64,000 bases of DNA, taken from positions 1,558,923 to 1,622,922 of the forward strand of contig JAWQFM010000010.1 of assembly GCA_033442325.1 (NCBI GenBank), read 5' to 3'. Position numbers and translations under genes: made by a program. Of this stretch, positions 16,253 to 25,548 are shown in pieces (the first letter of the stretch is position 1; each line of letters opens with the position of its first letter). Under the pieces are notes generated by a model. It did no database searches, was not told the origin of the DNA, and saw nothing but the letters and a program-made list of their open reading frames with translations. This DNA is from Salpingoeca rosetta. Lineage: Eukaryota > Protista > Choanoflagellata.

Positions 16253-19200
16253 CTACGGGAAGATGAGACGGTCGCGTGAGGTAATGACGTCACGGCACCA
16301 CGGGCACGTGTCGGAGATTTCCTCCACACACTGCGAACAGATGCAGTGGCCGCAGTTGAGGCGGATGTTCACGGGCCTGCGGACAAGCGTTGCATTGCGA
16401 GCGAGTGTGGGTGTGAACGTGTTGCAATGGGCGCAAGCGTGGGGAGTGGAGTGTGTGTTGATGGGTTAAAGGGGGTGACCACAGGTCTTCTCAGTGAGAC
16501 AAAAAAAAACGTGTCGGCAGAACTGTTTCCACACCACAAAGACGAACACACATGCACACACATGCACACACATGCATGCACATGCAAGTAAAACGCACCT
16601 TGCCACGCAAATCTTGCACAGAAGGTCCTCGTCATCATCGTCGTCGTTGCCGTCACCACCATCCACCTCAATCGGTGGAGCAGAGGGACCACCACCCTCA
16701 CCACCACCAGTAGTGTTGTTGTTGCTGTTGTCGTTGTTGCGACGGCGTGTGCGCGTGCTGCTGCTGCTGTTGTTGTCATCGGTGCTGGTTGACCTGTACT
16801 GCACCTGGTGGAAGAAGAGGAGCGGCTGCACGTTGTTTTCGTCGGAGATGAGGCCGCCTGCCTCCTCGGGGTCGCGCACCGACGGAAGACCAAAGTGCAG
16901 TGACGCGTACGACACGAGCACAAGCACGACCAGGAACAGGATGCACCCGGCCAGCCGTGAGGCGGAGAGGATGGCCAGGTTGGTGGTCATGGGGTTGCAC
17001 ACGCCGTCAATCACGCGCTTGTAAGTCGGCCAAAACGTGGCGCAGTCGACGCTTGCCGCCACCTTTGGCCTGCATGAACACGGGCGCGAGCACAAATACG
17101 AATTGGGCAGAGGGCAAGCACGGTGAGCAACCACAAGCGCTTCCTACACAACGCAGTGCAATGTGCAAACAAACAAACAAACAAACAAACAAACAAACAA
17201 AATAACAAAATAACAAACAAACAAAATAACAAACAAAATAACAAACAAACAAACAAACAAACAAACAAACAAACAAACAAACAAACAAACAAACAAACAA
17301 ACAAACAAACAAACAAACAAACAGAAGACAAACGAAACTGACAGCTGCTGTTGTAGGTCGTTAAGCCCTTGTTGCAGAGCGATTGCCGCGGATTGAAACT
17401 GTGGTGCGTTCTCACGCGTGTAGTTCACCACCAGCTGTGCCGCCAACACCCCCTCCTGCGCCTCGCTCTGGGCCTGTCAGATGCGGCTCAACATGAGGTG
17501 TATGCCAACAACCCAAAAAAAAAAAAAACGGTGCACAAACATGCGTATGCATCCATTGCATTTTGGATGGGGTTGCACATCAACACATCACATCCATGCG
17601 CGTTCACCTGGTTGATGTCTGGCTGAAACGGACTGGTGGTGTTGCAGAACAGATAATACGACACATACGCATCGTCCTCCGCAAACTGACAAACCAAGAC
17701 CGTGGATGATGAGACGAGGTGGACGCAGACAAGGTGTGAGCTGAGGAGATGGCGCAGAGTGAAAAGTGCTCGCAGCGCATGAACATGCCAGAGTGCATGA
17801 AGATGTCAGAGAGATGCGCTCCCACGCACGACAACGGGTTGTGGCAGCTGATCATGCACATACGCGCCGCACAAACCTGGTGGATGAGGAAGGTGGTGGG
17901 CTTCATGCACACGTCGGAAACGCCAACGGCGGCCGCGCTCTCAATACCAACAACGGCAGAGAGGATGACGAGACAGATGGCACCTGGTGCACGCGGTGGT
18001 GGTGATTGAGTGGTGATTGAGTGTGAGGTGGTGTGGTGTGGTGTGTTGACACCGGCAGTGGCATGGGGCAATGCACAGAACAAAGCCATACACATACAAA
18101 GGAATAGACACATTACACCTCTGCACAAGATAAACAAACAAACAAACAAACAAACAAACAAACTCCCAGACACAACTTGTGGACGCAGATGAGCATGTGC
18201 AAACAAGAGCGCGCGCACGCACTGATGATGATGGATGTGATGAGTTGACAGTAGCTGCGGCAGGCCAGGGCCACCAGCAAGAGAATGAGCGCAAAAACAG
18301 CAAAGGCGACGAGGCCAAACTCGGCAATAGAGCGGTAGTGGTTGTATGTCCGCGCATCCGAATAGAACGAGTCAAACTGTACATGACAATACCAAGGCAC
18401 AAGCAAGCAAAATGAGCAACGAGAGGGGCGAGTTTTGGCCCGGGGGGGGAGGGGAGGTGAGAGAAGAAAGGGATGGGAAGGGTGTGGGGGAAAGGTGACG
18501 GATGTGAGAACGGCGAAAAATACAAGAGTCAGTGAGTGTAAAAGCTCAAGCACGCCGTGCTGCTTCCAAAACACGCACACACACACACACGCGCGCGCGC
18601 ACACACACACACACACACACACACACACACACACACACACGCACACACACGCACACACACCCACACACACGCGCGCGCGCGCGCACGCACACACACACAC
18701 CTCGAAAGTGGGTGCGGATCGCACGACCGAAGAGAGGGAAGACTGAAACGTCTGTGTGCCGGACACAATGTCCTGGAGTGCTCGTTGCACGTCCTGTGGC
18801 GCACTTGCCTATTGGTGTTTTTGGTGCAACGAACAGTGCAGTCAAGTGTGCGGTGTTGTGTCAGTGGCGGAGCAGAAGCAGAAGATAACACGAAGGTTGA
18901 ACCACTGGTGGAATTCAGGCGCAGACACGCGCACGCATGAGCACGAAACCTCCCCCCCCCCCGAGTCATACCAGGTCACGCTGCAGGCGTTGTGCCATGT
19001 TGAGCGGGTCCGTGGCGTCAGAACCAAGGTTTGAGACGGAGGTCAGCGCCTTGTTGTACTTGTTGTCCAGGCGCTCGACGTGTGAAATGGTGTCTGTCAC
19101 GGCATCCGTGGTCTCCACGTTTGCATAGATGCACGCCACCATCAATAGACTGCATGGAGGGCGTGGGGATGGGCAAGAGATTTGGGGGGGGGGAGGAAAC

Positions 19201-19915
19201 AGGGTGAGAGACGAGCAGGTTGAGTGGGGGGGAGGCAACACCAATGCGAATTCGACAGCACGCACACAGAGAGGAGAGAAAGAAAGAGAGACGCAGACAC
19301 ACACGGAGTAGAGAGAAAGAGAGACGCAGACACACACGGAGGAGAGAGAGAGAGAGACGCAGACACACACGGAGGAGAGAGAGAGAGAGACACGCAGACA
19401 CACACGGAGGAGAGAGAGAGAGACACGCAGACACACACGGAGGAGAGAGAGAGAGAGAGACACACACACACACACACACACACACACACACACACACACA
19501 CACACACACACACACACAAACAAACAAACAAACAAACAAACAAACAGACTCACATGGCAGAGATGCCGAGGGTGACGGCGGCGATTTTGAGCTTGCGAAA
19601 CCTGCGCAGCTGTGTGTAGTACGAGTTGGTGCGGTCCCACCGCCGACTGCAGTTGCAACACAGCACAATGAGCACGGCAATGATGCCCAGGACGCTTGCG
19701 GCGAGGAAGATGCCCGCGATGATCACCAGCGACGTGTAGTACTCCTCATTCTGCGGGTTGAACGCGCCTTGCGTGGGTACGTCGACGGGCGCAAAGTCGG
19801 ACTTCAAGTGCAGCCACGAATGGAAGAAGCGCACCAAGCTCGAAGGCGCCAACTCCCCTCCCTGTCCTCCAGCTTGGGACAGAGCGAAGGAAGAAGGAAT
19901 CCACCCTTCTCTCAT
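16253..19915 (-). CDS. Tweety-family (TTYH-like) multi-pass membrane protein with a C-terminal C3HC4 RING finger (paralog A)
   Basis: N-terminus PSSLVRFFHSWLHL...FNPQNEEYYTSL followed by TM1. Tweety-like segments AAAVGVSDVCMKP, YVSYYLFCNTTSPFQ and DCATFWPTYKRVIDGVC precede the last TM. The tail splices across intron 16377-16598 to CKICVAR|PVNIRLNCGHCICSQCVEEISDTCPWCRDVITSRDRLIFP*. Confidence 0.85.
17166..17322. repeat. (AAAC)n microsatellite in an intron of Tweety paralog A
   Basis: Long AAAC array with AAATAAC variants. Confidence 0.95.
19270..19460. repeat. ~30-bp compound tandem repeat (GAGAGACGCAGACACACACGGAG...) in an intron of Tweety paralog A
   Basis: About five degenerate copies. 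Confidence 0.85.
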
Positions 19916-23800: not shown

Positions 23801-25548
23801 GTGACTTGTCACTCCCCACTCACCACACACACACACACACACACACACACACACACACACACACACACACACACACACACACACACACACACACACACAC
23901 ACACACACACACACACACACACACACACACACACGCGCGCGCGCGCGCGCATTCGCCCCTACCCCCCCCCACTCTGTATGCACAACCCACTCAAAGCACT
24001 TACAGATGACGGTTGCTGATATGCGCTGGCAAAAGGTGCCGCAAACGAGGGCAGCCAAGGAGAGGGCCATGACCAGGACCATGAGGCCAATCAGCCCAAA
24101 CTCGGCAATGGAGCGATACCGGTTGAAACGCTCCGCATCAGAGTAAAACGTGTCAAACTGCAGCACGCAACATGAGTGAATGCCGTGAGTGGAAGCGTCC
24201 TAAACCGACTGTTGAGGTGAAACAGACACGCATGTGCTGTGTACGCGCTGAGTGCGTACTGTTTACAGTTGCATGTGCATGAGAGTGTAGGCGTGCTGAG
24301 GTGCTGTGTTGACGCCGTGGTAGCGCATTGTAGCATCTCCCTCACCTCAAATGAAGGCACAGCCTGCACAACAGAAGACAGCAACGACTGCAGGCTGGTT
24401 GTATTTGTCACAACATCTTCAAGCGCCTGCTGCACACCCTGCCGTGCGTCGTCCTGTGCGTGTTTGTGTTCACGTGGGTTGAATTGTGAACACACACACA
24501 GGCATACACAGGCGTACACAGGCACACACAGACACACACACACACACGCAACACCCCCCTTCACACACACAGACACACAGACACACACAGCGCACACACA
24601 CACATAGACATACAGACAGTTTAGCTGACCAGGTCGCCTTGGAGGTTGTGGGCGGTCACCAACGTGTCTGTGGCTTGTGTTCCCAGGTTGGTAACGCGCA
24701 GAAATGCAGCGTTGTATCGATTCACCAGCCTCTCCAAGCCGGCAACGGTGTTAGACACCATCCCGTTCATGGAAACATTCGGGTAGATGCACGCAGCCGC
24801 GGTAGCTCTGCATAGAGAGAAGACACGGGAAGAGGGTTGAAAGCGACCCAACACACGCAGATGCGGACCAAAAATGTGTACGCGTACGCGTGCATATGCA
24901 TGGAATTGGCTGTGCGTTTCCCCTTGAAGCGAAATCGTGTTCACTAAGGATGGTGCCTGCAGGCACACGTGCATTGACAACCCACGAACGCGAGTGTCGT
25001 TGTATCACATTGTTTACATGCAACACGGGTTCGCTCGCAGGCTTCAACTCCTGGACTTACATGGCAACGAGTCCGCACGTGAGACACGCAATCTTGATGC
25101 GGCGACTTCGCTTCTGTGAGATGCCCTCGCTGTTGTTGCTGCTCTCGCTGCTGCTGCTGCTGTCATTGCTGTTGCGCCTGTAGGCGCGGCACATGCAAAA
25201 TACGGCCCAGAGCGCGACGAGAAGAAACGCTACCACGAACAAGCCAGCAATGATCAACAAGGACGTGTAGTATTCTTGTTCGTCGGGGTCAAACGCGCCC
25301 TGTGTCGGCACATCCACGGAGGTCGCGTCTGCCTTCAGGTGTCTCCAAGAGTGGTAGAAACTCACGAGGCTGGACGGCGTCACGTCCCCACCAAAGGAGA
25401 CAGCAGAGCGCAAAGCCGACAGCATCTGCAAAGCAAAGCTTGTGGACATGACGGAGGACGCGGGTGTTGGGGTTGTTGGCATTTCCCAGTCGAGTGGGGT
25501 CGGAGGTGCGGGCGGGGCGATGACAACCGGGTCCCACGGACTTGGCAT
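20893..25548 (-). CDS. Tweety-family (TTYH-like) membrane protein with two C-terminal C3HC4 RING fingers (paralog B)
   Basis: Collinear with paralog A (PSSLVSFYHSWRHLK...VDVPTQGAFDPDEQEYYTSL; AATVGISDMCMQP; DCSAFWEQYTRVVDGVC). RING1 is CHICCDR|DVSVQLTCRHWLCSEC...CPYCR (intron 21578-21837). RING2 is CKICYEH|NVDTRLSCGHCICSHC...CPFCRVVITSRDPLIFP* (intron 21032-21298). Confidence 0.85.

Follow-up and report, generated by a model that had tools for sequence, protein, structure and literature searches.

The closest described relatives of the two proteins considered here are, for the membrane body, vertebrate TTYH1/2/3 (7P5J, 7P54, 7RTT, 7RTW) and, for the C-terminal domains, the RINGs of XIAP, BIRC7 and cIAP1/2, with RNF4 and MDM2 in the wider class. 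TTYH bodies have been solved as dimers, and RINGs of the IAP type are active in the form of tail-swapped dimers. A comparable logic, in which a cytosolic RING carried by a membrane body acts on membrane proteins, is known from MUL1/MAPL, TRC8/RNF139, RNF145 and the MARCH family, in which the membrane body possibly senses lipids or neighbours, and the C-terminal RING of MUL1 is of the PF13920 type; these membrane bodies are unrelated to the one described below, and none of them is known to be of the Tweety/prominin type. Animal TTYHs, which lack a RING, recruit their HECT ligase in trans, the levels of TTYH2 and TTYH3 being set via Nedd4-2 ubiquitination (He et al. 2008, as cited in PMC8273234), whereas in the choanoflagellate Salpingoeca rosetta an IAP-type RING lies in the same chain as the Tweety body, and one protein has two.

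The S. rosetta genes PTSG_03976 (A) and PTSG_03975 (B) are tandem paralogs on the minus strand of the window, by which we mean the whole stretch of 64,000 nucleotides that was analysed. An earlier note on this DNA had described them as adjacent same-strand paralogs, and their strand and coordinates are as it claimed, from the ATG of B at 25548 to the stop of A at 16253-16255. The gene models are as follows.

16253..19915, minus strand: gene A, PTSG_03976, CDS of the short isoform, 570 aa, 9 exons
19915-19554, 19149-18972, 18808-18701, 18376-18223, 17983-17877, minus strand: A exons 1-5
17685-17608, 17473-17343, 17069-16599, 16376-16256, minus strand: A exons 6-9, then the TAG stop at 16255-16253
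20595..20817, minus strand: alternative first coding exon of the A long isoform (630 aa), joining A exon 1 at 19872
20893..25548, minus strand: gene B, PTSG_03975, extended CDS, 851 aa, 10 exons
25548-25061, 24807-24630, 24453-24346, 24157-24004, 23678-23572, minus strand: B exons 1-5
23329-23252, 23078-22948, 22731-21838, 21577-21299, 21031-20896, minus strand: B exons 6-10, then the TAA stop at 20895-20893

The model of gene A is the same as RefSeq XP_004994871 at every residue. For gene B, annotated at 806 aa, the first 805 residues of the 851-aa model are those of RefSeq. Every intron of both genes is GT-AG, and exons 2-7 are equal in length in A and B (178, 108, 154, 107, 78 and 131 nt), with the 78-nt exon at 17685-17608 in A and 23329-23252 in B. 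The ATG of the A long isoform follows 75 nt downstream of the end of gene B, those nucleotides being 20892 to 20818.

On the evidence of profiles and structural modelling, PTSG_03976 and PTSG_03975 are true members of the Tweety/TTYH family with five predicted transmembrane helices. The Pfam Tweety family (PF04906; gathering score 31.8 bits) was matched at 146.8 bits by A, at 107 bits by B and at 103.9 bits by a protein of Hartaetosiga balthica; A covers positions 2-402 of the 431 in the model, which was also matched exon by exon in a profile search of the genome. The cryo-EM chains of TTYH1/2/3 were matched in sequence over residues 25-432 (E 1.2e-22 to 1.5e-19); identity between human TTYHs and the S. 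rosetta protein is only about 20%. The earlier note had proposed a Tweety-like multi-TM body and suggested predicting its structure, and the prediction agrees with these matches: in a Foldseek search with the AF2 model, whose mean pLDDT is just 57.7, TTYH chains were the top 11 PDB matches (E 6.5e-11 to 3.5e-6; target TM-score 0.64-0.75). The full-length model shows long helices in the body, with the RING and tail at pLDDT below 60. The hydrophobic cores are located as follows.

16898..19711, minus strand: five hydrophobic cores of A, residues 69-87, 111-129, 236-254, 261-279 and 412-430 (hydropathy scan, AF2 helices, TTYH3 alignment)
22578..25257, minus strand: five hydrophobic cores of B, residues 98-116, 153-171, 278-296, 304-322 and 448-466 (hydropathy scan)

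The five cores are at matching positions in the two proteins, in a TM arrangement of 1-2, 3-4 and 5. The likeness to vertebrate TTYH1/2/3 extends from the Pfam family and five-helix body to the helical extracellular bundle and its cysteines, since four extracellular Cys in the second extracellular region line up with those of TTYH3 (7RTW) by phmmer (sdvC, ylfC, vdC and dgvC in the query against SDFC, YLAC, VDC and TGFC) and are invariant across A, B and H. balthica. Potential N-x-S/T sites (NYT, NTT, NVS) are found in predicted outside regions. By homology, the N-terminus would be extracellular and the C-terminal tail cytosolic, a tail that serves as a regulatory platform in the vertebrate proteins too. 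We place the RINGs in the cytosol because the body aligns with TTYH over all five helices and because Arg and Lys abound in the TM1-TM2 loop.

Three RINGs are encoded at the locus.

16295..16618, minus strand: A RING, residues 524-557, cut by a phase-2 intron at 16598-16377
21487..21857, minus strand: B RING1, residues 707-743, cut by a phase-2 intron at 21837-21578
20935..21318, minus strand: B RING2, residues 800-838 of the 851-aa model, cut by a phase-2 intron at 21298-21032

All three are interrupted at one common position, each by a phase-2 GT...AG intron. The in-frame GT-AG junctions put forward earlier (16377-16598, 21578-21837 and 21032-21298) proved exact and are all phase 2; those of the A RING and B RING1 are included in the RefSeq models, whereas that of B RING2 is absent from RefSeq. 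When spliced, the RINGs read C-x2-C-x10-C-x-H-x2-C-x2-C-x7/10/12-C-x2-C and then Arg (zinc-ligand spacings 2-10-1-2-2-7-2, 2-10-1-2-2-10-2 and 2-10-1-2-2-12-2), so that the eight C3HC4 ligands and the following Arg, which the earlier note had read as intact, are indeed so in each. The last Cys and its Arg stand in CPWCR, CPYCR and CPFCR in S. rosetta and in CPFCR in H. balthica, and in all three S. rosetta RINGs the first Cys pair is CxIC, with Ile, and the last is CPxC, with Pro. The A RING is followed by RDVITSRDRLIFP and then the stop; the tails end LIFP in S. rosetta and IIFP in H. balthica.

The resemblance to IAP-class RINGs that had been noticed by eye is real, since the RINGs belong to PF13920 (zf-C3HC4_3; gathering cut-off 27 bits) and their best solved relatives are XIAP (A RING, E 1e-7), BIRC7, RNF4 and cIAP1/2. 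The PF13920 scores were 35.1 bits for the A RING, 35.8 for B RING1 and 37.1 for the H. balthica RING; the Pfam run that gave the Tweety scores had zf-C3HC4_3 at 30 bits in B. Each of these solved relatives is a dimeric RING situated at the C-terminus or close to it, and the alignment extends into the tail, where F569 aligns one position past the corresponding Phe of XIAP. In addition to PF13920, the ligand spacing and the linchpin Arg, the S. rosetta RINGs have in common with the IAPs a tail of about 12 residues with hydrophobic/aromatic residues at the extreme C-terminus, and a tail-mediated homodimer is predicted here. Unlike the IAPs, the S. rosetta proteins have no BIR, CARD or UBA and carry the RING on a polytopic membrane protein, and B RING1 is internal rather than terminal. 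For A residues 505-570 the predicted homodimer scored 0.49 against 0.00 for the best control, a score that may reflect memory of IAP dimers; in eukaryotes the homodimer mark was reached by 17 of 29 solved same-chain pairs and by 0 of 30 solved single chains. The runs share at least 90% of contacts, the partner pLDDT is 76-77, and residues 565-570 are in the interface. In cIAP1, R606 is the 'linchpin Arg', and the tail Phe/Tyr works in trans in BIRC7, RNF4, MDM2-MDMX and cIAP1 (PMC6349121).

The architecture, the zinc ligands, the linchpin Arg, the hydrophobic/aromatic tail and the occurrence of this conserved layout in another genus are established. Judged from these features and from comparison with the described families, A and B are probably membrane-anchored RING E3 ubiquitin ligases, for which activity is a candidate property. 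Since TTYH bodies have been solved as dimers and this RING class works in tail-swapped form, the pairing of two Tweety subunits would assemble an active RING dimer on the cytosolic side of the membrane; in B, both RINGs of a single chain might form the dimer. The RING dimer would then recruit the E2~ubiquitin conjugate and ubiquitinate its own tail, neighbouring membrane proteins or both, and in this way may govern sorting and turnover both at the plasma membrane and on endosomes. By analogy, such a ligase would most likely be the cis-wired counterpart of TTYH2/3, which recruit the HECT ligase NEDD4-2.

A further element of the tails is a short motif.

16664..16687, minus strand: PSAPPIEV in the disordered, predicted cytosolic tail of A, residues 501-508
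21951..21974, minus strand: PSAPPIEV in the tail of B, residues 668-675

The motif is identical in A and B within tails that are otherwise unalignable, and its codons differ at 7 of 8 positions, every change being synonymous; as judged from these codons, both S. rosetta paralogs keep PSAPPIEV under purifying selection. P(S/T)AP motifs occur together with RINGs in LRSAM1 and MGRN1, which act on TSG101; as in the Tweety-RING proteins, the motif lies upstream of a C-terminal RING, although LRSAM1 and MGRN1 are soluble. The S. rosetta genome encodes a UEV (TSG101-type) domain (32.2 bits, cut-off 27), and extracellular vesicles are induced by both Ttyh1 and Prom1 (PMC11405016). These observations would fit an ESCRT-coupled budding scaffold in which the Tweety body bends the membrane, like TTYH1 and prominin-1 in vesicle formation, PSAP recruits TSG101/ESCRT-I and the RING gives the ubiquitin signal, the proteins thereby driving or regulating the release of vesicles or tubules. 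Such a scaffold would be a narrower form of the ligase explanation and is compatible with it. We regard it as rather unlikely, since P[ST]AP has only four residues and is common in Pro- and Ser-rich tails, and since in the H. balthica ortholog the corresponding position reads EPSFPI and P[ST]AP is absent, which means that the motif is not conserved across genera as a TSG101 ligand. Its most elaborate form is more doubtful still: choanoflagellate Tweety-RINGs would be self-ubiquitinating, membrane-bending scaffolds in which a TTYH/prominin-type body shapes vesicles or protrusions, with the collar microvilli as a possible site, and the dimer-activated RING together with PSAPPIEV passes the membrane patch to ESCRT-I. 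If this were true, the link between TTYH and ubiquitin would be older than animals and would have been rewired at a later stage into the trans pairing of PY motif and NEDD4-2, and the disputed core function of TTYH would shift to regulated membrane remodelling and sorting rather than ion conduction.

Among RINGs whose ligands are intact, some serve as non-catalytic partners, and at the c-Cbl and IAP RING-E2 interfaces it is through the linchpin Arg, the CxIC Ile and the CPxC Pro that E2~Ub is activated. The RINGs of A and B could accordingly be imagined as dimerisation or interaction modules like MDMX or BARD1, tethering subunits or recruiting another ligase. Two RINGs in B would be compatible with a division into an active and a structural domain, and the sole in-silico functional support, the predicted homodimer with its possible memory of IAP dimers, concerns dimerisation. 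We nevertheless consider a purely non-catalytic role improbable, since the closest solved relatives of the RINGs are active ligases and all three RINGs retain the positions of E2~Ub activation (PMC6349121).

The second half of B RING2 is an addition to the annotation made by the earlier note, since the RefSeq/Broad model of B ends ...CKICYEQ where a TGA and the donor of the intron 21298-21032 overlap. Taken at face value, that stop would leave B with one RING and a remnant half-RING, and exon 21031-20896 would be a relic or belong to a minor isoform only. The exon scored 24.3 bits by itself on PF13920, against the cut-off of 27. It retains, however, an open frame, the four remaining ligands and the ...VITSRDPLIFP-stop tail, and its intron is canonical (GTGAGT...CAG) and has the phase and position of the other two RING introns. 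Furthermore, in comparison with the A RING exon over 35 codons, 10 codons are identical, 16 differ synonymously and 9 non-synonymously, whereas A and B are only 35% identical over the 100 nt past the stop. By this comparison the B RING2 exon is under purifying selection, and we think there is little chance that B ends at the RefSeq stop.

That the fusion is an annotation artefact, with the RING exons belonging to separate genes or the Tweety part being a chance match, is close to refuted, since the Pfam and PDB matches are far beyond threshold, a single ORF in a transcriptome assembled independently and de novo for a different genus contains the same fusion, and the first CxxC of each RING is at the end of the long tail exon, which leaves no space in which a separate promoter or start codon could lie. 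The Pfam check on Tweety plus RING that the earlier note had proposed placed both families above cut-off in A and in B. That note also called the architecture unfamiliar, which holds in part: no description of a Tweety-RING architecture was found in the literature searched, but UniProt already names these proteins 'RING-type domain-containing protein' with Pfam Tweety assigned, and the layout exists in H. balthica. The fusion is therefore new to the literature searched and not to the databases. With searches of low reach it was seen in two genera only, which limits the argument from conservation, and a third Tweety gene of S. rosetta lacks a RING. The uncharacterised H. balthica protein (EP00055_P007015), a complete ORF on a single transcriptome contig with Tweety and a C-terminal RING, is 30% identical to A over its full length and shares the layout, the ...IIFP end and an acidic stretch ahead of the RING; it differs by its single RING, by a short tail free of low-complexity sequence and by PSFPI in place of PSAPPI.

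Two paralogous genes lie on the minus strand of the window between 25548 and 16253, as the earlier note had seen, in sequence that is eukaryotic and whose encoded proteins carry the source name Salpingoeca rosetta. They were modelled from open frames, splice signals and the likeness of the two copies. For gene A (570 aa, 9 exons), the model and RefSeq entry XP_004994871 (a PTSG_03976 isoform) are identical; the model of gene B matches PTSG_03975 (806 aa) over the whole of that protein and adds one further exon, reaching 851 aa. Every intron of A and B begins with GT and ends with AG, exons 2-7 have equal lengths in the two genes, the membrane bodies are about 50% identical, and in the tails only a few islands align. 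The three RING junctions placed by the note are exactly the intron ends that we derived, and each of these introns sits three residues past the second Cys of its RING.

Exons and RING introns of the gene models (window positions)
17685-17608, minus strand, 78-nt exon of A
23329-23252, minus strand, 78-nt exon of B
16598-16377, minus strand, RING intron of A, GT...AG, phase 2
21837-21578, minus strand, RING1 intron of B, GT...AG, phase 2
21298-21032, minus strand, RING2 intron of B, GT...AG, phase 2, donor GTGAGT

Microsatellites of the types (CA)n/(GT)n and (TTTG)n crowd the introns of A and B, for example at 17150-17340, 18560-18700, 19300-19540 and 23820-23960. A further such tract (16537-16587) is found inside the RING intron of A, and the loci that span it, L003 and L009, were left out of the analysis.

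The Tweety-like, multi-TM body described from the sequence is true Tweety. Against Pfam Tweety (cut-off 31.8 bits) single exons of A and B scored 18-30 bits, and the full proteins scored 146.8 bits (A, model positions 2-402 of 431) and 107 bits (B, positions 2-421 of 431). When PDB sequences were searched with phmmer, the cryo-EM chains of TTYH3, TTYH2 and TTYH1 were matched over residues 25-432 at E 1.2e-22 to 1.5e-19, with four extracellular cysteines aligned. The AF2 model, made from a four-sequence alignment, is moderate (mean pLDDT 57.7, pTM 0.44); its top 11 PDB matches were all TTYH chains (E 6.5e-11 to 3.5e-6, target TM-score 0.64-0.75), the first match after them having an E of 7e-3. 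Five hydrophobic cores occur at matching positions in A and B, the TM1-TM2 loop is rich in Arg/Lys and N-x-S/T sites fall within both predicted outside regions. Homology with TTYH would place both tail and RINGs in the cytosol. The entry titles of the cryo-EM TTYH structures in the PDB describe dimers and lipid complexes.

Judged by sequence, the RINGs of A and B are of the IAP type. Every spliced RING is a full C3HC4 with spacings 2-10-1-2-2-(7, 10 or 12)-2 followed by Arg, so that the zinc ligands are intact and all three CPxCR motifs reported earlier are present; the Arg directly after the last Cys is the "linchpin" in this RING class (PMC6349121). PF13920 (zf-C3HC4_3, cut-off 27 bits) scored 35.1 bits on the isolated tail of A, 35.8 on RING1 of B and 37.1 on the tail of a Hartaetosiga balthica protein (see below). 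The Pfam check proposed in the note finds both modules above their cut-offs: the Tweety body in both genes, and the RING of A and RING1 of B in isolated tails. The scan of full-length A did not list the RING, possibly because the low-complexity tail was filtered. Among solved structures, A's tail is closest to XIAP (E 1e-7), RNF4, BIRC7 and cIAP1/2, and the XIAP alignment runs on through the tail (...VITSRDRLI versus ...VITFKQKIF), in keeping with the IAP-class likeness suggested for the terminal RINGs. A, the H. balthica protein and RING2 of B share an ...(L/I)IFP ending, and every RING has an acidic run before it. The predicted homodimer of A residues 505-570 scored 0.49 against 0.00 for the best control, a pass that may reflect the predictor's having learned the solved IAP dimers; among eukaryotic proteins, 17 of 29 that are solved as one-chain pairs reach this mark, against 0 of 30 that are solved as single chains. 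Agreement between the runs was at least 90% of contacts, with a partner pLDDT of 76-77, and the predicted interface comprises residues 565-570 together with 521-522, 525, 532, 535, 538-541 and 556. We take this prediction to show likeness, not binding.

Several lines of evidence bear out the in-frame joining of Tweety and RING. All three junctions are GT...AG and phase 2, and those of A and of RING1 of B are used in the independently made RefSeq models. A separate gene for the RING is excluded by the first CxxC of each RING, which the long tail exon carries at its end. In H. balthica a complete ORF of 539 aa on one Trinity contig (EukProt) scored 103.9 bits with Pfam Tweety, carries a C-terminal PF13920 RING and is 30% identical to A over its full length. 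This contig supports the same layout in a second genus at the level of transcripts.

RING2 of B depends on the last exon, which is absent from RefSeq. Of 35 codons aligned with the last exon of A, 10 are the same, 16 show synonymous and 9 non-synonymous differences; the exon keeps all ligands and the tail, and identity to A drops to 35% in the 100 nt past the stop. These features mark it as a coding exon that is under selection. In RefSeq, PTSG_03975 stops at a TGA made up of the final base of the exon and part of the GTGAGT donor of intron 21298-21032 (window 21296-21300, minus strand). If this intron is spliced out, the stop is gone and a second complete RING is encoded. Since the TGA overlaps the donor and the last exon bears the signature of selection, the RefSeq model is very probably shortened and without half of the second RING, and a correction to the PTSG_03975 gene model is the likely practical outcome.

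A third Tweety-like gene of S. rosetta was found by its Tweety match (loci L002, L005 and L006), directly upstream of the ATP synthase beta-subunit gene.

Third S. rosetta Tweety-like gene
G000:C1, about 3409330-3406200, minus strand, Tweety match

No RING-like motif was present in any minus-strand frame of this locus, and the fusion is therefore not general among the Tweety genes of this genome. An exhaustive search with exon 1 gave nine matches, of which the true ones besides A and B were only the H. balthica protein and P0004, a 105-aa Tweety-like first exon 32% identical to exon 1 of A, located on Logan contigs L007 (SRR14727191) and L008 (SRR14727189) that end directly after that exon. 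The other five were rejected as chance matches through transmembrane or low-complexity stretches: three protocadherins (P0003, P0005 and P0009), a protein with Flg_new (Listeria-Bacteroides) repeats (P0008) and P0007, whose sequence does not resemble Tweety. Searching the ESM Atlas with the H. balthica protein gave Tweety clusters of diatoms and green algae alone, all weak (0.77-0.78), for none of which a RING family was listed. Word-index protein searches, each capped at 8000 candidates sharing words with the query, brought back just the clusters of the queries themselves and so have no bearing on the spread of the fusion. For two craspedid choanoflagellate genera the fusion is established. 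Three other S. rosetta RING exons, each 48% identical to the RING exon of A, may be related to the A/B RING module or be its source.

Other S. rosetta RING exons
G000:C22:1148665-1148766, RING exon (L012) in a 5811-aa open frame
G000:C29:881697-881798, RING exon (L011) in a 1114-aa open frame
G000:C29:417899-418000, RING exon (L013) in a 1366-aa open frame

What we describe is a domain fusion, specific to this lineage, that joins two well-known modules and is visible in databases but undescribed. The note did not know the architecture from the literature, and no description of a Tweety-RING fusion was found in the literature searched on tweety, RING and choanoflagellates, nor were PTSG_03975 and PTSG_03976 named there; however, RefSeq and UniProt already list the proteins under hypothetical or "RING-type domain-containing" names, with Pfam Tweety annotated. 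A 2021 review of the tweety family counted five S. rosetta homologs and never mentioned a RING.

A and B each combine a Tweety body with a long disordered tail bearing one (A) or two (B) intact RINGs of the IAP type, a layout that is kept in a second genus. Because TTYH bodies are solved as cis-dimers, according to PDB entry titles, and RINGs of this class act as dimers, subunit pairing would assemble an active RING dimer beneath the membrane, and the two RINGs of one B chain might also pair with each other. The ligase could then mark its own tail, neighbouring membrane proteins or both for sorting and turnover. TTYH proteins were first called chloride channels, and their function is unsettled. 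Nedd4-2 regulates vertebrate TTYH2 and TTYH3 through ubiquitination (PMC8273234), and for this reason the choanoflagellate proteins look like that control wired in cis. A natural Tweety-ligase fusion, conserved in two choanoflagellate genera, hints in "Rosetta-stone" fashion that sorting by ubiquitin is part of what the family does at its core, which agrees with Nedd4-2 control of human TTYH2/3. Transfection and CRISPR editing are possible in S. rosetta, so the idea is testable in a close relative of animals.

The tails of A and B share one identical motif, PSAPPIEV.

Copies of PSAPPIEV
16687-16664, minus strand, in A
21974-21951, minus strand, in B

Seven of its eight codons differ between the genes, all synonymously, and the motif is under selection in S. 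rosetta; the matching place in H. balthica reads EPSFPI. The genome encodes a UEV (TSG101-type) domain at G000:C5:2073435-2073671 (32.2 bits, over the cut-off) and, purely as a hypothesis, PSAPPIEV could be a TSG101 ligand. Ttyh1 and Prom1 act in membrane bending and vesicle formation, and TTYH1 induces extracellular vesicles much like prominin-1 (PMC11405016). A bolder reading, which we consider rather unlikely, would tie Tweety-RING action to membrane bending or vesicle formation and, through PSAP, to ESCRT.

The long isoform of A (P0010, 630 aa) begins in an alternative 5' exon.

Alternative 5' exon of A
20595-20817, minus strand, spliced into exon 1 of A at 19872

Its ATG is 75 nt downstream of the stop codon of B, and the 3' end of B and the upstream 5' exon of A must therefore overlap or abut, which may reflect read-through B-A transcripts. 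This exon also encodes QPSAPPP, an echo of the tail motif. Upstream of the gene pair, an uninterrupted open frame of 1778 aa occupies 6350-11686 on the plus strand.
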